A stretch of 64,000 nucleotides of DNA. Origin: Heteronotia binoei. Taxonomy: Eukaryota. Of this stretch, positions 4,041 to 59,864 are shown in pieces. The stretch is taken from contig NC_083226.1 of NCBI RefSeq assembly GCF_032191835.1, positions 55,800,001 through 55,864,000 of the forward strand, given 5' to 3'. The notes under the pieces are model-generated. The model worked only from the letters and a program-made list of their open reading frames with translations. It ran no database searches and was not told where the DNA came from. Position 1 is the first letter of the stretch; each line of letters begins with the position of its first letter. Both the position numbers and the translations under genes were made by a program.

Positions 4041-4877
4041 AGGGGGGAGTGTGTGTCCACACCTGAGAAACCCACTGGCTGAGCAGGACAGGTGCCTCAG
4101 AGCCGAGTAAGCACCAAACATCCCTAACCACACTGTTTTCACATTCAGTAATTACTTCCAGTTTTCTTTCCTCTCTGCCTCTCTGCCTTACTACCTGCTT
4201 CAAAGTAAAATCACCTCTGTGTGAGCTGAGAGTATATATCCATTCTGCTCCCATAGAGTAGAATGGGAGCTCTCTTGTTTGGTAGCCAGCACGCAATGCC
4301 TGTTGAGCTTTGGAGGCCACTATTGGTGTTTCCAGGGCCACAGAAGGGCTGCAGAAGTCCATCCCCTCTGTTGTTTTCATGATTAATTGATCAACACTAG
4401 AACAAACTGCATGAACCTACATGAAAACCATAGAGGTTTGCGGGAGCTTTATTGCTGACCCAAATGACCCTCAGCTCATGAATCATGAATTGGACAGTTT
4501 TCATGATGAGGTTCATGCCTAGGCCTTGAGCGGCTTGGAGCACCACTGAGAAACTCTGGCATCCCTCCTGCCCCCTAATCCTCCCACCTACTTTTGCCTT
4601 CCCTCCACACTGGAAGGAAGACTGGTAAGGGAGGGAGGCCAGCCAGCCAGCCACAGCAGCTTAGCCCTGCCACCAGCAGCTCTCATCTGGTCAGAACAAG
4701 CTGGGGGGGTTACATATAGACCTGTGCTCTGCTACTCACTTGCTACTGCCACTGGGAGCCAGCACAGAATTGTGAGTTGTGGGTGGCTTCTTGGTCTAGC
4801 GAGGGTGGGGAGTGGCCTGAGAGTGCCCAGGCTGCATGAGGCCTGCCCCAGTTATCCATGTGTTCATCCTCCATCCC

Positions 4878-5748
4878 TAGGCTTCCCAAATCCCCCGCCT
4901 GGGCGGGGACCCTCGATTTGGAGATTCCTCCCCCCGCTCGCCAAAAATCCAGAAAGTGGGGGGGGAGTGGCAGCCCTTCCCACCCAGCCCTGATCCCAGC
5001 AGCTTCTCCTCGCCCCTTCCCTTCCCACTGATCCCCGATGCTTCTCTTCGTCCCTTCCCTTCCCTTCCCACCCTGGATCGCAGCACCTTCTCCTTGCCCC
5101 TCCCTTCCCACCCAGCCCTGATCGCACCAGCCGTTCTTCCGTTTTCCCAGGCTGCTTCCCACCCCCAGTCAGCTGGCTGGTGTGTGGGGGGAGAAGCTTC
5201 GCCCCGCCCGCAAAGGACCATGTGCCTTTGCACCTCCGGAGGCTTGATTGAAAGGCTTCAGTTTGGGATGGTGTGTCTGTGTTGCTGTGAAGAAGCTGGC
5301 AGCAACTCGTGAGTAGAGAGGCCAATCTCCTGCATCAGATTTGCCGGAAACGTCTTCATTATTCCCTATGTGGAGATCAATTCTCATAGGGTATAATGGG
5401 GAATTGATCGGGAGGTTTCAGGGGCTCTGGGGGAGCTGTTTTTTGAGGTAGAGGCACCACATTTTCAATATAGTATTTAGTGCCTCTCCCCAAAGTACCC
5501 CCCAAGTTTCAAAATGGTTGGACCAGGGGGTCCAATTCTCTGAGCCCCCAAAAAGGTGCCCCTATCCATTATTTCTTATGGAAGGAAGACATTTTAAAAG
5601 GTGTGCTGTCCCTTTAAATGTGATGGCCAGAACTCTCTTGGAATTCAATTATGCTTGTCATACCCTTGTTCCTGGCTCTGCCCCCAATGTCTCCTGGCTC
5701 CACCCCCAAAGTCCCCAGATATTTCTTGAATTGGACTTGGCAACCCTA
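4878..5748. mobile_element. Non-autonomous hAT element (MITE), TAGGGTTGCCA-type termini
   Basis: Starts TAGGCTTCCCA and ends TGGCAACCCTA. Perfect 8-bp TSD TCCATCCC at 4870-4877 and 5749-5756. Same family as 52457-53255. Confidence 0.9.
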
Positions 5749-5799
5749 TCCATCCCTTCCTGAAGAAGCAGGTGGGTATTTGAACTCAGAGCCATCAGG

Positions 5800-6300
5800 G
5801 CCTGGGAAGGGAGGAGGGAGATCCAAGCATGTGTGAGTCCCTCTTTGCCACTGCCAGCCTGCCATAAATGCTGTGCTTGGGCCAGTTTATGTGCTCTGCC
5901 TCCATTATGCATCTTATCCCTTCCTGAAGAGATTAGTGGGGGACTGGGGCTGTTCAAACTTGGAGTCGTTGTGGCCTGAGAGGAAAGAAGGAAGAGCTGG
6001 TGGGTTGATGGGTGTGCACATGGGTCTCTCTTTGCCACTGCCAGCTCACATGAAAAGCTGTGCTGGGGCTAGTGCATGTAGTCTGTCTCTGTCCTCCATC
6101 CCATCCCAAAGAAGTGAGTGGGTGGTAGGGGACTGGGAGGTTCAGACTCAGAGAGAGCCATTGGGGCTGGGGAGGAGGACGATGTGGGCACATGTAGGTC
6201 TCTCTTTGCCACTGCTGGCCCACCCTGAAAGCTGTGCTGAGGCCAGTTGTGTGAAACACAGACCTCTGTCCCATCCCCGGAGAAGTGTGTGGCTGGGGCA
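5800..6300. repeat. Tandem repeat, ~180-bp unit x3
   Basis: TCTTTGCCACTGC..GCTGTGCT recurs at ~5843, 6030 and 6203. Confidence 0.65.
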
Positions 6301-6384
6301 GGAGTGGTTTGGATGGGCCAGCTGCACTGTTTGGAGCTGGGGAAGGGGGGAAGGATTTCCGATTTTATGAATCAGCAATCTTTG

Positions 6385-6750
6385 CCAGCCAGCTCCAGGC
6401 TGGGAAATTGCTGGAGATTTGGCAGGGGAACTTGGGAGGGCATGGACTGTAGCAGGGAATAATGCTTCTTCAGGGCAGGATGGAGGATGAACACATGGAT
6501 GGACCTCATGCAGCCTGGGCACTCTCTGGCCACCCTCCACCCTTGCCAGGCCAAGAAGCCACCCACAACTCGCAATTCTGTGCTGGCTCCCAGTGGCAGT
6601 AGCAGGTAGCAGAGCACAGGTCCATGTGTAACCCCCCCAGCTTGTTCTGACCAGACGATGGCTGCTGGGGGAGTTCAGTGCCTAAACTTGCCATTTTCTC
6701 CTGGGAAATCTGGAGATCAGTTGTATTTACAGGAGATCTTAGAGTCCAAT
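6385..6750. mobile_element. Short TAGGGTTGCCA-family MITE, interrupted by the right arm of the inverted repeat
   Basis: CTCCAGGCTGGGAAATTGCTGGAGATTTG..AATAATGC, then a ~210-bp insert, then GCCATTTTCTCC..GGAGATCAGTTGTA. Collinear with the copies at 43795 and 44331. Confidence 0.55.
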
Positions 6751-7224: not shown

Positions 7225-7292
7225 TGAGCCGCCCTGAGCCACTCTGTGGGAAGGGCGGGGTATAAGTTACGGAATAAATAAATAAATAAATC
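7225..7292 (+). mobile_element. Short L2-type 3' tail
   Basis: GAGCCGCCCTGAG..GGGCGGGGTATAAG followed by (AAAT)n. A reverse copy lies at ~37667-37732. Confidence 0.55.
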
Positions 7293-10980: not shown

Positions 10981-11265
10981 GGTTGTTTTCGCACTCACCT
11001 CCAGCCGGCGTGACCCCCCTCTTCACCACGCAGGATCTGCGCGGATTTCGCACTAAATGCCGCGGAGCAGCCTTTTGCGCCGGAAACTCCCGTCGCAAAA
11101 GCCGCTCAAATGGGAACTGCTTTTTGGGGTTCCCGTTTGAGCGGCTTTTGCGACGGGAGTTTCCGGCGCAAAAGGCTGCTCCGCGGCATTTAGTGTGAAA
11201 TCCGCACAGATCCTGCGCGGTGAAGAGGGGGGTCGCGCCGGCTGGAGGTGAGTGCGAAAACGACA
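10981..11265. mobile_element. Fully palindromic MITE, probably PIF/Harbinger-like
   Basis: Arms of ~137 bp with ~7 mismatches, mostly CpG transitions, around a ~12-nt loop. Termini contain GTTTTCGCACT. 3-bp TSD AGA at 10978-10980 and 11266-11268. Confidence 0.85.
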
Positions 11266-13652: not shown

Positions 13653-14523
13653 TAGGGTTGCCAGAGACAGAGGTCCTCCACTGCCATACCTAACACTCAG
13701 TTGCTGATCAGTTGGCTGTTGGGGGGAATTTACCAAGAGAAAAGAAGGCCTGGCCTCATGACCAGCATCAAACAGGAAGTGATGTAATCACACCAGTGAT
13801 GTCCAGGTGATGCTCTGCTATTTGGGCAAAATCTCTATGGTAGAAACAGGGCTTGCCCTAGACTGTATGGTGCCCAAGGCCAGGGTAACTTCTAGTGCTC
13901 CCCGCCTCCCAGCAGAGAAAAACTGGCCTTGGTCTCACTTCACACACACCTGTGCGTATCACCTGGCCATCTCCTTGCGAGTCGCACATCACCTGTTAAC
14001 ACACTACACACACACAAAGGGCCTGGCTGCTTCCTCACAAGTCACGTTGCACCTCACATGCTCCACAAAATACTTAACAGTCATTACATTTTTTTTTAAA
14101 GGTTTTGAGGGGTATGAGTCTTTCCTTTGCTTGTTGTTCACCTGGACCTGTGCATCTCAGAGACATCTAGTGGTCACTTGAGAGAAAACACTGCTTCACT
14201 ACAAAGCTTAGTGATCAAGATGCAGCAGTAAAGCTCCCTGTAATCTGTCCTGTAAAGCCATGTGGGAGATATCCAATTTGGCGCCCCCTGCAGGCTGGCA
14301 CCCTAGGAAATTGCCTAGTTTGCCTAGTGGCAGGGCCGGCCCTAGGTAGAAACCAGTTTTACCCTGGAGTTTTTGCCCAAATTCCAGAGCATCACCTGGA
14401 CATTGGTGACATGATGATGTCACTTCCTGTGTGATGCCAGCAATGAGGCCTAGGCCTTTCTCCTCATATGTCACACCCATCCCCCACCAGTTACCAGTTG
14501 TCAGGAGGGACCTGACAACCCTA
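13653..14523. mobile_element. hAT-like MITE with ~190-bp imperfect subterminal inverted repeats
   Basis: TAGGGTTGCCAG...CTGACAACCCTA. CAGGAAGTGA..TGTCCAGGTGATGCTCTG..TTTGGGCAAAA occurs inverted at both ends. Flanks CATGAATT and CATGAGTA match 6/8. Confidence 0.7.
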
Positions 14524-33048: not shown

Positions 33049-33275
33049 TCATAGGACAGAATGGACTCCATTCTGTCCTATTAGCGCATTAGACAGATTG
33101 GAGTCCATTCTATATTATGAGCCCATTGGACAGCATGGACTGCATTGTATCCTATGGGCCCATAGGATGGAATGGACTCCATTCTGTCCTATGCATTCCA
33201 TTCGGTTCTATGGGCCCATAAGATACAAAGAAATCCACTTTGTCCTATGGCCTCATGAGATGGAATGGACTCCAT
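33049..33275. repeat. Array of palindromic ~37-bp units
   Basis: The first unit is a perfect 15-bp inverted repeat ATAGGACAGAATGGA-C-TCCATTCTGTCCTAT (33051-33081). Unit centres at ~33061, 33098, 33135, 33172 and 33265. Confidence 0.8.
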
Positions 33276-35188: not shown

Positions 35189-36599
35189 GTAAGAATGAGA
35201 GCTTCCAAATATGCAAAGATCCATGTAATAAAGTCTGGTGCATTTAATGCTTTTTTCATGGTAATACTGATGTTGAACTTTGAAGTCAACAATCTTGCTA
35301 TTTATATACTTAGGTGAAACTTCTTTGCTGGTTGCTGAGAGTGCCAAATCCATCAGAAAGGATGCACTTTCCCAAACAAATTCATCCAAGCTTTCTGGGT
35401 ATGTTCTATAAAATAACTAAAAGCAATTTTTCTAAATGGTCTGTCATCCAAAGATTGAGACATCCATTGCATTTTAAAAGTGCAAGCCAACTATTACAAC
35501 AAACCATTTCCTGAAATTTACGGACTCTTTGCAGGGGGAAAAAAATACAGTGGCTGCAGACTTAAGACAGATAGTTATATGGACTTGTATATATTCTGCC
35601 CCACACTTCACATGCACTCATCTGGTTTCTGAAGAAAATAGTCTTGTCACTGCCTGAAAATAGATATAGTGGTATAAGAAATGTGTTTCCTCTATTACTG
35701 ATGGCATCTCTATATGCTTACTCTCTGTCATCATCAGTGATCCATGTAGGGCTTTGTGGCTTTAGAACTGATCTGCAGACATTGCATGTAAATCTTATCC
35801 AACCAATCAACTTTCTGTGGAAACAGTTCTTCACAGATGATTTACTTCTAGAACAGCTGACTGAATCTGAAAAAAAATCCCTGTGTTCCTAGTAGAACCA
35901 GTTGCATTAGGAATGGATAACTCAGGCTTTTAGAAGCAGAGAACTATTCAAGGCTGTATAATTCTAATTCATTCCAAAAGTGATTTGTTATGCATTTTTT
36001 AAAATTTAGAACTAATTCAGCAACTGACACAAAAGAAGCTAAATCTTTAGTGTTGTGAAATATGAGCTTACATGAAATTACATAATGTGAGGTATATCAT
36101 GTGTATCTGTATAGCAGAAATAATAATTACTCCACCTTCCTATGAATGAGACTTTAAACAGACCTATGCAGAGGTATTCACTGTTAGGTGTTTGCTGACT
36201 TCATGGATTTCAACTATCCCTTTTTAAAAGTCTTGGTAAATTTGAATATGAGTTTGCTTTACTGACATTAGATACTAGAGATCAGGGTTTTCCAATCTTT
36301 TTGAGCCTGGGAGTACCTTAAGAATTCTGACACAGAATAGTGGACAAAATGGCTACTGTTGCAGAGATGGGGAACCAGCAACAAAATGGCTACCACAACT
36401 TACCTGCAGTCACACAGTGGAGATCCTTGTGCTGGCAGCTGCTGCCAAATAAAAATTTGCACAGGAAATCAAATCTCCAATGGCCAATCAAAAGTCTTGC
36501 TGGGCAAATGTCCACCTAGCCCCTTCCGTGTTATAAAAATACTTGGTAGGTTCCAGGAAAGGTGTTGGTGGGCACTGTGACAACCATGGGGTGGGAACA

Positions 36600-37660
36600 C
36601 CTGCTATAGCTCATATTTTCCTAAGTGGGGAAAGAGTATGATGGGAGCATATGGTGTCCTCTCGACAGGCTCACAGTGGCAGTTTCTAGGCATCAGAGTT
36701 TGTACAGCAGCTCCAAGGCCAGGTATCAAAATGCAATTCCGAGGTTCAGGCACAGGATAGGCAACACTCCCAATGTCCAAAGGGAAATCCAAGAACAAGA
36801 ATACAGAGGTGCAGGCCAAGGTCAGAGACAATGAGGTCAAGCTAGAGTAGAGGCAGCAAGGTCAGTAGTTAATGGATAAGTTAGTTTCCACATAGCCTTT
36901 ACCTTCTTTGCTGTTTTTAAGCACCATGCTGGTCAGCATCTTGTACTGAATCATGAACCAGATGGCTGCCTCAGACCTGCCCCTGCAAGAAATCATCCTC
37001 ACCGTTGGTGCTGGGCTGGAGCTGTGCTACTAGGTGGGCACTGCACACTCAGCCTTGGAAATCTCTCCTCATCTTCCTCCTATGCTGTTCCCAAGGCTAT
37101 GGTGATGGTGGTGGGGTAAACTGACAGGCAGCTGACTCCCTGTTGCCAGCACGGGGCTGGGGATCTGAAGGGCCAGTGTGCTGGTTCCTGGATGAGAATT
37201 TTTATCTGCCTCCTCCTGAAGCGCCTTTGGGTTGGGGTCAGGTCTGCTGGCTGCCTCTTCCTCAGAGGAGTCTTCATTGTCTCTTTGTTCTACTGGGCTT
37301 GGATGATTCATGGCACCATTCACCCAGTGACCTTCCCATCATCTTAAATACTGCTAAAGCATATGTTCATGCATTCTGTTTGACCATTGGACTGAGGAGA
37401 GATATACCTGGGTTCCTAGAAGGGAATGTATGGCCTGCCGGAACTGAGAAGTAAATTGGACTTCACAGTCTGAAATCAAGTGTTTTGGCAGTCCATGAAG
37501 CCAAAAAATGTTGCACAAATAAAACTGCACAGTTTCACAAGTGGAGAGGCGACCAGTACAGGAGATAAAGTGAGCAGCTTTTGTGAGACAATCCACTGCT
37601 ACCAGAATGCTTATGTGGCCAATTAAATTGGGTAGGTCTCTAATGAAGTCTATGGGCATT
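36600..37660 (-). mobile_element. Second Gypsy remnant (Ty3-type integrase core plus LTR-like sequence)
   Basis: ORF 37354-37659: IDFIRDLP..ILVAVDCLTKAAHFISC..IFWLHGLPKHLISD..QFTSQF..LLGTQVYLSS. Confidence 0.75.
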
Positions 37661-37986
37661 TATTTATTTATTCATTCATTCCGTAACTTATATCCCGCCC
37701 TTCCCACAAGTGGCTCAGGGCGGCTTACAACAAATAATAAAACAATAAAATCGGAACAAATTAATACATTTAAATACATTTAAATGAATAGTCAAGGGCC
37801 TGCAGGAGTGGACAAAGGTTGCAGCACCTCTGTGGGCTTTCTTGGTTGGTTCTTTGCTCATTGAAAGACTTCGAAGGATGCAGAATATTGAGTTACATTA
37901 ACCTGGACTGGAAGCCACCAAAACAGGAGGTGTAGAGTCTTATAGCTCCTGAAGTGAATGGATTGACATCATTCACCAGATGTAGA

Positions 37987-38765
37987 ACTTCTTTATGAAC
38001 ATACATTAAATGACTATATAAGGATATAAGAATTCATCTAAACATATATTTGGATACAATAAACTCATTGCAAGGTCCACCTACACAAGAATAGTAACTC
38101 GTACACAATTATTTACAAAGGTGCCAGAGTTTCTTTTCCAGAAAATACAATTTGTGACACGCTTCCAGTAAAAATAGGCACGTTTCAATGGCAATTCTTC
38201 ATCCGACAAAAAACTAATTTTTATGAAACCACCACTCAATTCATTATATGTATGTGTCAATTACACAAGGCAATAGTTCTTTTTAGCAGCTGACTTGCCG
38301 CGGTCTGATAAGAATTAAACCTGGAACCAGTGCTCTATAAGCTGCAAACACCATGTTACTGGTCAGTTACTCAAAAATGGCACTGTCGGTTCTCTATAAG
38401 TGTTTGCAGCTTATAGAGCACTGTTTCCAGGTTTAATTCTTATCAGACCACAGCAAGTCGGCCACTAAAGAGAACTGTTGCCTTGTAAAATTAACACATA
38501 CATGTAATGAATTGAGCTGTGGTTCCATAAAAAATTAGTTTTTTGTCAGATGAAAAATTGCCATTGAAACATGCCTATTTTTACTGGAAGTGTGTCACAA
38601 ATTGTATTTTCTGGAAAAGAAACTCTGGCACCTTTGTAAATAATTGTGTACGAGTTACTATTCTTGTGAAGGTGGACCTTGCAATGAGTTTATTGTATCC
38701 AAATATATGTTTAGATGAATTCTTATATCCTTATATAGTCATTTAATGTATGTTCATAAAGAAGT
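37987..38765. repeat. Long palindrome: 365-bp arms with a 48-bp spacer
   Basis: 37987-38351 is the reverse complement of 38400-38765. No TSD at the outer ends. Confidence 0.95.
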
Positions 38766-38889
38766 ATTTGTAAATTGTTCAATTTTATGTTATAAAGAGT
38801 TATAACTATGATACAAAGTATATGGTGATATTCTTAAGTAACAGTAATTGGTGATATAGCTTTAACGCCACAAACACAGTTTTCTCATA

Positions 38890-39710
38890 GAGCGTTTTCG
38901 CACTAGCGTTTACTCCGGCGTAGCACCCCATTTACCTCCGGATCTTTTCCTGGTTTTCCCACTTGTTGCTCCGGCGCTGCGGTTTGCTCCAGCGCTTCAG
39001 GGGTTTCACGCCGGAGTATGTTTTTCAACATCCTTCCAGAGTTTTTGAAAACCTCCGGATCCACACCGGATCCACTCCTCGGAGTTTGCTGTGGGAAATC
39101 CATCCACGCCGGATCGACTGCTTTGTGGGCGTCACCCTCTCCCTTTCCGTCCTCCCACCCCATCCACCCCCTTGGCCAATCATCAGCCGTTCGCGGCGCT
39201 TCCCAAAAGTGCCCGCACGGCCATTTTTTTTTAAACTTCATATTTCTTGCGTAATAGCGATATTTCGAAATTAACAAAAAAAACCCCCTCCTGCGTTATT
39301 TCGCTGTTGCGTTATCTCGCAACTACATTATACATTGTTGGGGGGGGGAGAAATCTAGTGCCGGCGCGGGCCAAAGCGTTCATGTGTGTGTGTTTTCAAA
39401 AGGCAATGCCTCCCTCAGCTGTGCCACCAGGATTTCTCGACCTGCACAAAATCGCCATGTATAAAATGGGAAGTTGGAGTCCTGCATTCTTCTCCCTGGC
39501 TACATTCCGCTCGGTTAGAAAATAGACGCGAGCTCGCTCTTCACACGCGCCACAGAAGGGGAAGGAGAGAATGGGGCGAAGGGGGGGAGCTCTGGCGGCA
39601 GGAATCAGTCGGGTCCCCGTTGCAAGCGCCAGCCAGGGAGGGGAAAGAGCGCAGAGGAAATCCCAGCTTCGCCACCCGGGAGGGACCGAGGCTGGGAAAG
39701 GAAGAAGCTG

Positions 39711-39744
<34 letters not shown>

Positions 39745-40175
39745 CGATTTCTCTCTCTTCGTTATTGCGATATTTCGCAACTTCGGAATTTGGGGGGGGG
39801 GGAATCTAGTGCTGGGATTCTCCACTGTGAATGCTTCTGTTAATACATAAAGGGCTGTGGAGGATCCTACAGCTACAGCCAATCCATGAGCAGAAGCAGC
39901 ACACGTGATGCGGTTTGTGCACGAAAAGAAGGGGAAGGAACAGCTCTGACTGCTCGATGTTACGTTATTACGTCCTTACGCAACCAGACTTGCGCTTAAA
40001 AAAAAATGATTGACAGGGCATTGAACTCAAGTCGATGCCAGTGGGAAAACGATTTGAGCCGGGGCTTCATGGAAAGCAACTCCGCAAATGAGTCCATGTG
40101 CGAAAACGAGGAAAATGAGCCGGACATAATTGCGCCGTGGAATAAGGGGAGCAAACGCTAAGTGCGAAAACACCC
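38890..40175. mobile_element. ~1.3-kb non-autonomous DNA transposon, same terminal motif as the 10981 hairpin (Harbinger-like)
   Basis: GAGCGTTTTCGCACTAGCGTTT ... AAACGCTAAGTGCGAAAACACCC. 3-bp TSD ATA at 38887-38889 and 40176-40178. CpG-rich, with an internal (CA)n. Confidence 0.75.
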
Positions 40176-40444
40176 ATAGTCTTCAACCTTTCTTCCCTTT
40201 TTTGCCACCCACCTGGGAATTGGCAACACTAAACAGTGGGTCAGTATTCAGAGGCTGACTGAGGTCCCAATGCTAAGCACACTTAACCACACATTAAGTT
40301 TCTCCTTGACCTCCAGGAGCCACACAATTTATGTGAGAGCCGCATGTGGCTCCAGATTCAGTTTGGCCACCCCTGCTCTAAATCTTTACAACAGCCTTTT
40401 AAGGTAGAGCAGCTATATTTTCCCCAAATTCCAAACTTGATGTT

Positions 40445-40696
40445 AAAAAGGTAAAGTAGTCCCCTATGCAAGCACCAGTTGTTTCTGACTCTGGGGTGAT
40501 TTTACATCATTACGTTTTCATGGCAGACTTTTTATGGGGTGGTTTGCCATTGGCTTCCCCAGTCATGTAAACTTTACCCCCAACAAGCTGGGTACTCATT
40601 TTACCAACCTTGGAAAGATGGAAGGCTGAGTCAACCTTGAGCTGGCTACCTGAACCCAGTTTCCGCAGAGCTTGGACTGCAGTACCACAGAGCTCT
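40445..40696 (-). mobile_element. Sauria SINE
   Basis: Minus strand GGTTGACTCAGCCTTCCATC..GGTAAAATGAGTACCCAGCTTG and BovB-like tail CCCCAGAGTCAGAAACAACT..ACTTTACCTTTT. Confidence 0.8.
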
Positions 40697-42104: not shown

Positions 42105-43650
42105 ATAAGAACATAAGAGAAGCCATGTTGGATCAGGCCAATGGCCCATCCAGTCCAACACTCTGTGTCACACAGTGGCCAATATGTGTATGTATGTGTG
42201 TGTATACACACACACACATACACATACATACATATACACACACACACATATATATATACTGTGGCTAATAGCCACTGATGGACCTCTGCTCCATATTTTT
42301 ATCCAATCCCCTCTTAAAGCTGGCTATGCTTGTAGCCGCCACCACCTCCTGTGGCAGTGAATTCCACATGTTAATCACCCTTTGGGTGAAGAAGTACTTC
42401 CTTTTATCCGTTTTAACCTGACTGCTCAGCAATTTCATTGAATGCCCACGAGTTCTTGTATTGTGAGAAAGGGAGAAAAGTACTTCTTTCTCTACTTTCT
42501 CCATCCCATGCATAATCTTGTAAACCTCTATCATGTCACTCCGCAGTTGACGTTTCTCCAAGCTAAAGAGCCCCAAGCATTTTAGCCTTTCTTCATAGGG
42601 AAAGTGTTCCAAACCTTTAATCATTCTAGTTGTCATTTTCTGCACTTTTTCCAATGCTATAATATCCTTTTTGAGGCACGATGACCAGAATTGTACACAG
42701 TATTCCAAATGAGACTGCACCATCGATTTATACAGGGGCATTATGATACTGGCTGATTTGTTTTCAATTTCCTTCCTAATAATTCCCAGCATGGCGTTTG
42801 CCTTTTTTATTGCAATCACACACTATCTTGACATTTTCAGTGAGTTATCTATCATGATCCCAAGATCTCTCTCAAGGTCAGTCTCTGCCAGTTCACACCC
42901 CATCAACTTGTATTTGTAGCTGGGATTCTTGGCCCCAATGTGCATTACTTTGCATTTGGCCACATTGAACCTCATCTGCCACGTTGACGTCCATTCACCC
43001 AGCCTCAACAGATCCCTTTGGAGTGGCTCACAATCCTCTCTGGTTCTCACCACCCTGAGCAATTTAGTGTCATCTGCAAACCTGGCCACTTCACTGCTTA
43101 CTCCCAACTTCAGATCATTAATGAACAAGTTAAAGAGCATGGGACCCAGTACTGAGTCCTGCGGCACCCCACTGCTTACTGTCTTCCACTGTGAAGACTG
43201 CCCATTTATACTCACTCTCTGCTTCCTATTAATTAGCCAGTTTTTGATCCACAAGAGGACTTGTCCTTTTACTCCATGACACTCAAGCTTACTAAGGAGC
43301 CTTTGATAAGGAACTTTATCAAAAGCTTTCTGGAAGTCAAGGTAAACAACATCTATTGGGTCCCCTTTGTCCACATGTTTGTTCACCTCCTCAAAGAACT
43401 GTAATAGGTTAGTGAGGCAAGATCTTCCCTTACAGAACCCATGCTGAGTATTCCTCAATAACTTGTATTCATCAATGTGCCTACTCATTCTGTCCTTGAT
43501 AATGCTTTCTACCAACTTTCCAGGTATTGAAGTCAGACTGACTGGCTGGTAATTTCCCGGATCTCCTCTGGAACCCTTTTTAAAGATGGGGGTGGCATTT
43601 GCTACCTTCCAGTCCTCAGGAACGGAGGCAGATTTCAATGAAAGATTACA
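42105..43650 (-). mobile_element. CR1 LINE 3' 1.5 kb, RT nearly intact (one in-frame stop), microsatellite inside the 3'UTR
   Basis: ORFs 42823-43638 (GNYQPVSLTS..QHGF..YLDFQKAFDKV..GVPQDSVLGPMLF..FADDTKL) and 42265-42819. TTCTTATG-type tail at 42105-42120. Confidence 0.95.
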
Positions 43651-57079: not shown

Positions 57080-57830
57080 GAACATAAGAAGAGCCCTGCT
57101 GGATCAGACTAGTGATCCATCTGGTTCAGCATCCTGACACTGTGGTCAGCCAGTTCACCTGGATGGCCAGTAACAGAGCACAGAGTTCAAAACCTTTCCC
57201 TGATGTTGCCGCTTGGCTATGTGATTCAGAAGCTTAGTGCCTCTGAATGTGAACATTCCTCTCAGTCACAGTGGTTAGCAGCCATGAATAGGCATATTCC
57301 CCATGAATCTATCTAACCCCCCCTTTCAAAATGTGTATTCCTATGGCCATCACTATATCTTCTGGCAGTGAGTTCCACATTTTAATCATACTGTATGGAA
57401 AATAGTATTTCCTTTCGTCTGTCCTGAACCTACTGTCCATCAGCCTCATTGGATGCTCTTGAGTTCTAGTATTTTGGGAAATGGAGAAAAAAGTTCTTTT
57501 TTTCAACACTCTCCACTCCGTTTGTAACTTTATAACCCTCTATCATACCCCCTTAGGTTCCTCTTTTCTATATAGGAGCTTTACAATACAGGTGATTTTA
57601 TTCTCAAGCCCTTTCCTAATAATCCCTAACAAACCCACTGCTGCAGCACACTGGGTTGACACCTTCACTGACCCCAAGATCTTGTCCGGTCTCACGAAGT
57701 TCAGTCCCATTAGCCTATACTAGAAGTTGGGATTGTTTGTCTCATTGTACATTACCTTAACACTTGCCAACACAGAGCTTCATTTGCCACATTGTTGTTG
57801 ACTCACCCAGTTTGTGAAGATCCTGTTTGA
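57080..57830 (-). mobile_element. Old CR1 3' fragment
   Basis: ATAAGAACATAAG tail; minus-strand NTRTQEHPMRLMDSRFRTDERKYYF..WNSLPEDIV. Confidence 0.75.
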
Positions 57831-59589
57831 TGACTCAGGTTTGGTGAGTTTATATTCAGACTCAGATTTATATTCAGTCTTTGAACCTCTCTATCACCAG
57901 ACGGAAAGCTGGGGGGCCCTTGGCCCAATGCAAGGCACCAGCGTAGCTCTAGGCTCCAGACCTCCAGCATGCACCTTACAGTTGCCTCTGGCATGCCTAG
58001 GCACAGGAAGGTTTGCTGGGCATGGGGGGGTCGTAGCTAAATGAAGCTCAACTCTAAAGAAGCAAATCACACCAAAGTTGGGGGTGGAGACTGGGAGAAG
58101 GTCAGCCACCGTGACTGGAGTTTACAAATGGTCCCTGCCTGGTGGGAGCACGCTTTAAAAGAAGGCTGTGTGTTTGCAATTCAGCTGAACCCTCAATGTT
58201 GCACCATGGCAAGTAAAACTCTCTTGCAGTTTGCACTAAAAGGGTATTTACATATTCAGAATATCAATTTGCAAGAAAGCTGTGCTTCTGCAGGAAGGGA
58301 GGATCCCTGTAATCCTTCAGAACTGGAAAGGGAAGAGGAGGGGAAAACGTTTCTTTCTGCTGAAAGCAACACAAAACCCAAAGCTATAAAGGGAAACGGA
58401 GTGGGGTGAAATACAATACCCCCCATACACACTCACTCACTCCAAGCAGGGAGCTTCTGCTTCTGAAGAAAAACAGCATTGCAAATTTACCTGGATCTTG
58501 AGCATTTACCAGCATACGGGCAGGTCATAGGCACTTAGGGAAGCTTGCAGGTGATGAACTCGGGAAGGGGGGGGGCGGTTTCCCTTCAACGATTCTTGTC
58601 ATCAAGGGCAGGGGGGAGAGAGATTCTGAGCCCCTCAGCCAATGGCAAGAAGCATGAGCGGGGGGGGGGGGGGGCGCTCAGTGCCTGAACTCTTGCTGTG
58701 GCAGTGGAAGGGGGAAATTTAAATGCTGCAGCCATTTTTCAGATAGAACCAGGTAGCATTCTGCAGGAAAACAGAGGAGTTGGCAGTAAGCAGAGTTCAG
58801 TGCCAAAATTATTTTTGATTCTGCAAGCATTTTAATGTTTGGTGTGTCCTTAAGACATTAAAAAAACCAAAATTTCCTGTGAGTCCTGCCCCCCCCCCCA
58901 GACTGGAAAATACCCCTGGTACTTCAGCAGCCTCTTCCAGGGGAAAAGGCCGAGTGGCTGCTGAGGTGGTTGGTGGTCAGTGGCTGCGAAATTTAACCCC
59001 TCATAAGGTGGAGTCGCTCCAGCTGCCAGAGGTGGGGGGAAGGGTGCAGCAAAACTCTGCAGGCCAAGTGGCTGGGCTGCGGATGCACCTCTCCCTGCAA
59101 CCAGAGAGGTTTGTCGGGTATGTATGTATGTGTGTGTGTGTGTGGGGGGGGGGCTTACTTGAAGTAAAAAAAATAAATCCTGATGTGCAGCAAGTCAGGT
59201 GCCTCGCTGCCACCCCCCCTTTCATGCACACAACTAAACTAGTCTGTCTGGCCTGTGGCAGAAGCAGCCCCCAGCTCCCCCTGGGAGTTAAAGTTCCCGC
59301 AAAACAGTTGATTGGCGGGTCCTTTAACTCTGGCAAGAGGCCCGCAAGCGACCTCTTCACCACCTGAATTACTTCTGGGGCTCGCTGCAGCCCCGGGAAC
59401 CATGACAGAAGCCTCAGGGGCTGGTTGGGGCCCCCGAGAAGGGGCCTCGCTCAGAAGTTGGGGGGCTGTGCTTCCACAGGCCCCCTTGTAACTATGGGCC
59501 TGAAGGCATCTAGTGAAGCTTATGGGTAGTAGGTTCAAGATGGACATAGAGAATGATTAAAATGTGCAATTTGCTGGCAGAGGATGTAG

Positions 59590-59864
59590 TAAATAAACAG
59601 CTTTAAAAGTGGATTAGATAGATTCATGGAGGGTAAGTCTATCAATGGCTACTTGCCATGATGATTGAGGGGAACTTCCACATTCAAAGGCACTAAGCTT
59701 CTGAATCCCAGAGCCAAGAGGCAAAATCAGGAGAAGGTCAGGGGAAGCCTCTATGCCCTGTTGTTTGCCATCCACAGGAACTGGATGTTCACTGTGTGAG
59801 ATGGGATACTGGACTAGGTGGACTATTGGTCAGATCCAGCAGATTATGTACTTGTGTTCTTATT
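59590..59864 (+). mobile_element. CR1 3' end
   Basis: GATAGATTCATGGAGG..TCTATCAATGGCTACT..GGTCAGATCCAGC..GTTCTTAT. Confidence 0.7.

Follow-up and report, generated by a model that had tools for sequence, protein, structure and literature searches.

The 64,000-nucleotide stretch of DNA analysed here, called the window below, carries at positions 37987–38765 a palindrome of 779 bp, the arms of which are nearly identical in their outer part and strongly diverged in their inner part, with a sharp boundary between the two. It is read here, tentatively, as an inverted duplication that is peculiar to this locus, not mobile, and the product of two steps, the younger of which may have been a fold-back extension of an older and smaller palindrome.

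Structure of the Palindrome

The repeat search and the gapped arm alignment agree with the earlier note on this DNA, which had described a palindrome with 365-bp arms and a 48-bp spacer. The left arm occupies 37987–38351 (365 nt) and the right arm 38400–38765 (366 nt), and the 48 nt between them, 38352–38399, form the spacer. When the left arm is set against the reverse complement of the right arm, complementarity ends abruptly at 37987/38765, and the gapped alignment of the two arms contains 21 differences, namely 20 substitutions and one 1-nt indel at 38217. The parts of the palindrome are as follows:

37987–38160, plus strand: left outer arm, young tier, 174 bp; 1 difference from its partner, K2P 0.006
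38161–38351, plus strand: left inner arm, old tier, 191 bp; 20 differences from its partner, K2P 0.11
38352–38399, no strand: single-copy spacer or hairpin loop, 48 nt; without arm complement except for an 8–9-nt word
38400–38591, minus strand: right inner arm, old tier; from the repeat search and arm alignment
38592–38765, minus strand: right outer arm, putative template; from the repeat search and arm alignment
37987–37992, plus strand: ACTTCT, candidate 6-bp joining microhomology; complementary to AGAAGT at 38760–38765

Folded as single-stranded DNA, a 799-nt stretch makes one long hairpin of −370 kcal/mol, compared with −74 ± 5 kcal/mol for dinucleotide-preserving shuffles, that is to say, the hairpin structure is far beyond chance. 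The inverted arms flank a single-copy spacer that has no partner, which is the arrangement of a fold-back inverted duplication. The words of the palindrome were absent from every read set searched, and it is hence without independent confirmation by reads.

Two Tiers of Arm Divergence

The outer 174 bp of the arms contain one difference, located at 38083 (0.57%, or about 0.6%), and the inner 191 bp contain 20 (19 substitutions and 1 indel), which gives a Fisher p of 1.8e-5 for outer against inner. The best single change-point by maximum likelihood lies exactly after 38160, and its gain was reached in 0 of 300 permutations. The two-tier divergence that had been seen by eye is confirmed in this way, with 1/174 versus 20/191 and a change-point at 38160/38161, and uniform divergence, which the earlier note had named as an outcome that would speak against it, is contradicted by both the gapped alignment and the change-point analysis. 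Within the inner part, the middle block (38161–38301) carries 19 differences, that is, 18 substitutions and the indel at 38217, which amounts to 13.5%, and the divergence tends to rise across it, from 7.7% to 18.4%. The innermost 50 bp of the arms carry a single difference, at 38327. A further change-point, after 38301, does not prove robust (post-hoc Fisher 0.028; gain reached in 90 of 300 permutations), and a third tier of low divergence in the innermost 50 bp is only suggestive.

In K2P distances, the outer arms stand at 0.006, the middle block at 0.146 and the whole inner 191 bp at 0.110; the inner/outer ratio is about 19, and one neutral rate for both, whatever its value, would make the inner arms some 19-fold “older” than the outer arms. 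The substitutions between the arms comprise 16 transitions and 4 transversions overall (16 versus 3 in the inner arms), six transitions are located at CpG sites, and the changes go in both directions between the arms. This spectrum looks like ordinary long-term decay, and is unlike one-sided damage or sequencing error.

Tests for a Mobile Element

No direct repeat is adjacent to either end of the palindrome, the flanks of which read ...GATGTAGA and ATTTGTAA..., and the earlier observation that a target-site duplication and recognisable transposon termini are absent therefore holds. The ends of the palindrome (ACTTCTTTATG...) do not match what we take to be the usual terminal motifs of hAT, Tc1/mariner, PIF or piggyBac elements. 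With the arm and the right flank as queries, no other copy of the arm was found within the 64-kb window by blastn, relaxed blastn or nhmmer. In addition, the reads and contigs of four runs were placed on 37207–39546 at 80% likeness; the neighbouring SINE-like and MITE-like repeats were recovered in this same placement, and no DNA contig from two small DNA runs fell on the palindrome. The ORFs of the arms belong to no Pfam family at E ≤ 10 and have no word-sharing homologue in a set of 5.8 billion proteins, so the arms are not recognisable coding debris.

Since a target-site duplication, termini, a second copy in the window, an Rfam or protein match and DNA contigs are all absent, a mobile-element family looks less likely than a local inverted duplication. 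An abundant family is argued against; a low-copy family is compatible with the data. The origin of the two arms from two independent insertions of an element of about 365 bp, such as a SINE or solo LTR, was rejected, as there are no tails and no tRNA-like Rfam match, and the flanking repeats on which this reading would depend are unconvincing, with only 5 of 7 matches.

The Left Flank and Its Surroundings

Two features of older mobile DNA were recognised on the left side of the palindrome:

37228–37991, minus strand: degraded Ty3/Gypsy integrase remnant, found by phmmer and tblastn; ends at the palindrome edge
37660–37790, no strand: high-copy SINE-like tail inside the integrase remnant; second copy at 7227–7291, seen as an insertion in the tblastn alignments

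The integrase remnant retains an HHCC zinc finger and the catalytic core, with stops and frameshifts. Its 101-aa ORF at 37354–37659 has 174 relatives at E ≤ 1e-10 in phmmer, and tblastn with integrase relatives traces the zinc finger and core from 37228 to 37968–37991, broken by the SINE-like tail. The 3′ tail of this SINE-like sequence (37675–37752) has a word depth of 821 in the 19 Mb of DNA contigs of run X1 and is covered by about 250 RNA reads.

The continuation of the Gypsy element was looked for on the other side of the junction. The upstream pol segments of 24 integrase homologues have no consistent tblastn match in the arms or in the right flank, and when the flanks were joined in silico without the palindrome, under three models, at most one alignment became longer, by less than 1 bit. 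An LR..IL...HD motif in the right flank has a chance-level score (610 of 2000 shuffles). These Gypsy tests are sequence comparisons only. Because the Gypsy similarity stops at about 37991 and never resumes in the arms, in the right flank or in the joined flanks, the left junction looks, from such comparisons, like a rearrangement joint that truncated the Gypsy remnant, and not like a clean insertion. The reading of the palindrome as an insertion into a contiguous Gypsy element was rejected, as its removal leaves the continuity of the Gypsy element unrestored.

The region is transposon debris, and no sign of a host exon was seen beside the palindrome. Two GC-rich MITE-like elements, at 38893–39264 and 10982–11264, share GTTTTCGCAC-type ends; the latter is itself palindromic, with 136-nt arms and an 11-nt loop, and the former has sharp read/contig boundaries, is present in RNA and is about 96% identical in X8, a run of another species. 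A minus-strand ORF at 42823–43638 contains a reverse-transcriptase domain (RVT_1, E = 1.7e-31), and as the ORFs beside it have no RNase H or integrase matches, this reverse transcriptase is probably that of a LINE. Further inverted-repeat pairs are found at 4670–6671, 13737–14465, 57192–59738 and 33050–33193, with arms of 62–172 nt and 75–92% complementarity; each of the four is probably a set of transposon ends or two repeats in inverted orientation. A perfect (CA)15 microsatellite lies at 39712–39742.

The Locus in Another Individual

Run X1 comes from another individual with the same species label, and its data behave like RAD data. One of its contigs starts exactly at the SbfI/PstI site CCTGCAGG (37799–37806), agrees with the window as far as 37992 save for 2 differences, and ends in 12 unmatched letters. 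Another contig matches 37406–37652 with 0 differences, and no other X1 contig was found on the palindrome. The X1 contig thus follows the window for the first 6 bp of the palindrome, ACTTCT, and then diverges from it; AGAAGT, with which the right arm ends, is complementary to these 6 bp. The divergence between the window and X1 in the flank is 2/439 (0.46%), which is close to the 0.57% between the outer arms, and a younger outer-arm event about as old as the split between the window and X1 would fit these values. The contig hints at a different allele beyond 37992; a deletion of the palindrome that is derived in X1, or a variant with no relation to it, would explain the misfit equally well.

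RNA Evidence and the Question of Function

The RNA data consist of two runs from two animals, of about 1 Gb each, with an unstranded library. Over about 720 of the 779 bp of the palindrome, the RNA depth is zero in both runs, and the remainder is a single island:

38123–38180, no strand: sole RNA-covered part of the palindrome, about 58 nt; extent derived from bin depths

The island is made up of about 28 reads in run X15, each of them 100 nt long and placed on the stretch over about 50 nt. All island reads carry G in place of A at 38140, 38145 and 38167, at 100% in both animals; where they are placed on the right arm, the mirror T>C differences appear, and the two mate orientations are equally frequent. 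Of the three changes, two restore CCGG (ETS/STAT-like motifs). Since the same three A>G differences occur in every read and in both animals, they are ascribed to a related copy or allele and not to editing; the reads point to one that is CpG-intact and embedded in a different transcript. This suggests that a CpG-protected, expressed relative of the 38123–38180 block is present elsewhere in the genome. ADAR editing was accordingly rejected, given the fixation of A>G at 100% in both animals, the restoration of CCGG by two of the changes and the unstranded library, and so was a splice-site reading of the island, the borders of which have no canonical AG/GT sites.

The expectation that the palindrome would yield a long dsRNA or ADAR substrate is not supported by these data, in which the depth is zero except for the island with its three fixed A>G differences; the proposed check for A-to-I editing, carried out on the two RNA runs, returned fixed differences in all reads and no editing signal. 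When 36500–40500 was scanned with Rfam at E ≤ 1, the single match, mir-302-like and located at the loop, stayed below the gathering threshold (28 bits versus 55). An exact 21-mer from the island has no match in the JGI metagenome contigs, as expected for a vertebrate sequence. The marks of a hairpin-RNA or miRNA locus, namely a transcribed stem and membership of a known RNA family, were absent from the two RNA runs, the foreign-looking island apart, and from Rfam, and no gene, RNA or regulatory function of the palindrome was found.

The Small Hairpin at the Spacer End

At the junction of the spacer and the right arm, a micro-inverted repeat had been put forward by the earlier note as the snap-back signature of the event that made the palindrome:

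38391–38418, plus strand: small hairpin with a 9-bp stem and a 9-nt loop, from CTCTATAAG/CTTATAGAG pairing in the sequence

The 9-nt word CTCTATAAG (38391–38399 and the first base of the right arm) pairs with CTTATAGAG (38410–38418). With a search limited to the inner 40 nt of the arms, 1.2% of shuffled spacers share a word of this length; with a search over the full arms, the proportion is 16%. In fold-back priming, the 3′ end pairs with an upstream complement and is then extended, and in the product the priming micro-repeat forms the innermost bases of both arms and is indistinguishable from them (PMC3907307). Here CTCTATAAG is preceded by sequence that lacks complementarity to what follows CTTATAGAG, and because of this and of the wrong geometry, the hairpin cannot have primed the present arms. 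It is probably incidental. The snap-back signature is not supported, as the pair sits between the spacer end and the right arm, in a geometry that does not suit fold-back priming, and is of near-chance length.

Proposed History and Its Alternatives

The tiers are best explained by a recent arm-templated event on the outer 174 bp, which may have been either conversion or a younger extension, as had been suggested from the sequence at the outset. For the extension, which we tentatively favour, we infer the following order of events. In the first and old step, the 48-nt spacer would have come to lie between inverted arms of at least about 190 bp, which would then have drifted apart to about 11% (K2P). 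In the second and recent step, a break would have arisen to the left of, or within, the left arm and been followed by resection, and the 3′ single strand carrying the left inner arm would have folded back onto the right inner arm. Synthesis in the outward direction would have copied 174 bp of the flank of the right arm, which would make 37987–38160 a copy of 38592–38765 and the right outer arm the template, namely the original flank of the older palindrome. Finally, the new end may have been joined to the other broken end at the 6-bp microhomology ACTTCT/AGAAGT, with the loss of the intervening sequence, including the upstream part of the old Gypsy element. A two-step origin of this kind would explain why the boundary at 38160 is sharp, why the outer arms are nearly identical, why a target-site duplication is missing and why the Gypsy element is truncated, and it would account for the X1 contig. 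Against it, X1 may instead carry a derived deletion or an unrelated variant, the low divergence of the innermost 50 bp, if real, is left unexplained, and the 38123–38180 RNA block indicates related sequence elsewhere, so that the arms could have originated from a repeat family.

Gene conversion, although doubtful in its own right, is nearly as likely as fold-back extension. In this case, a single old duplication with 365-bp arms would have had its outer 174 bp, and perhaps its innermost 50, homogenised by arm-to-arm gene conversion or by template switching within the hairpin, and the middle 141 bp would have escaped once they were too diverged to recombine. Homogenisation of inverted-repeat arms by template switching is described (PMC8604942). 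The same tier pattern is explained equally well in this manner, including the possible low-divergence innermost segment; the low-high-low profile, with its 7.7% and then 18.4%, resembles patchy conversion tracts, and a second rearrangement is unnecessary. However, conversion predicts an outer junction as old as the inner arms, and the X1 contig, which misfits 6 bp inside that junction, would have to carry a derived deletion or an unrelated variant. Conversion between arms that are about 13% diverged beside the tract is also expected to be inefficient, which counts against it. It is rather improbable that the palindrome is a low-copy mobile element, either MITE-like or foldback-like, or else a templated insertion that copied a palindrome from elsewhere, with tiers inherited from its source. 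A young junction together with old arm divergence is what the insertion of a pre-formed element would give, the genome is rich in palindromic MITEs (10982–11264 and 38893–39264, with GTTTTCGCAC-type ends), and the RNA block of about 58 nt with three fixed differences implies at least one more copy or allele. Against such an insertion stand the missing target-site duplication and recognisable termini, the lack of a copy in the 64 kb even with nhmmer or relaxed blastn, and the absence of DNA contigs and of RNA over about 720 of the 779 bp, while neighbouring repeats are covered; moreover, the X1 contig runs 6 bp into the inverted repeat, unlike a plain empty site 37986|38766, and in-silico removal of the palindrome does not restore Gypsy continuity.

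The remaining explanations are less probable again. One recent complex event of the MMBIR/FoSTeS type, in which the 141-bp block came from a diverged template or from error-prone synthesis, would suit the candidate 6-bp microhomology and the truncated neighbouring element, and break-induced synthesis is reported as mutagenic (PMC9262586); it is nevertheless very unlikely, as the 13.5% divergence, being mixed in direction, transition-rich and CpG-linked, corresponds to ordinary decay and not to strand-coordinated damage, and no second template is known. It is still harder to believe that the whole palindrome, or the identity of its outer arms, is an artefact of assembly or polishing. The palindrome words do occur in none of the read sets searched, but both flanks are unique and differ from each other, the 19 arm substitutions have a biological spectrum with only one indel beside them, and polishing could explain the outer identity at most. 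The least credible of all is a functional hairpin-RNA locus, that is, an endo-siRNA or miRNA source or an ADAR substrate with conserved stem parts under selection: the very strong folding potential and the sub-threshold mir-302-like match at the loop are in its favour, but the two RNA-seq samples give the stem no coverage, the sole island consists of 100% fixed differences of which two restore CpG, no Rfam threshold is reached, and the locus lies amid transposon debris.

Relation to Known Systems and Significance

In human inverted duplications, fold-back pairing through inverted repeats that are about 90% identical has been documented (Hermetz et al. 2014, PMC3907307), with junction microhomology of 2–8 bp. 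Those duplications are of kilobase-to-megabase size, with spacers of 0.8–70 kb, dicentric intermediates and terminal deletions (PMC3907307). The palindrome resembles them in its inverted arms around a non-duplicated spacer and in the proposed priming by a pre-existing inverted repeat, and differs from them in that its arms are 365 bp, its spacer is 48 nt, and it is interstitial and stably embedded. Another related class is that of short template-switch mutations, in which nearby sequence is copied in reverse complement and a stem is made or repaired (PMC5453318, PMC8794818). As with these mutations, the inverted repeats of the palindrome can be explained without transposon hallmarks. The template-switch events of Loytynoja and Goldman in 2017 and of Monttinen and Loytynoja in 2022 are said to be mostly tens of bases long. 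Unlike them, the copy here is 174–365 bp long.

The palindromes of sex chromosomes, which range from 10 kb to Mb in size and bear genes, have arms that are kept near-identical, and homogenised over their full length, by arm-to-arm gene conversion. The present palindrome is like them in that arms or parts of arms are far more alike than their age suggests, whereas its own identity is confined to a part of the 365-bp arm and it has no coding content. With MITEs and foldback transposons, it shares the sub-kilobase size, the AT-richness, the almost complete self-complementarity and the position among other repeats; unlike them, it has no target-site duplication, no family-type termini and no further copies detected in the window or in the runs searched. 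It can be regarded as a small interstitial relative, in kind, of fold-back inverted duplications and of hairpin-creating template-switch events. We read the palindrome as an ordinary by-product of DNA break repair, for which no sign of function was found: a scar of a familiar type, here in one more instance, within non-coding DNA that is rich in repeats.

Inverted repeats that are long and lie close together act as fragile sites from which larger rearrangements can start, and natural palindromes that still record their own formation are uncommon. If only conversion or a low-copy transposon was at work, the locus is junk DNA of an ordinary sort. Should the two-step reading hold, it represents a small palindrome that has been enlarging by self-primed repair synthesis. 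That the palindrome is growing outward by self-priming, with an extension that is still polymorphic or lineage-specific within the Bynoe’s gecko complex, is conceivable, if somewhat unlikely. The SbfI/PstI site at 37799–37806 makes the locus a RAD marker, by which the junction could be genotyped cheaply across populations. Under the two-step reading, the stepwise growth of a palindrome would be open to a test at the population level, with the outer arms present in some lineages and absent in others.
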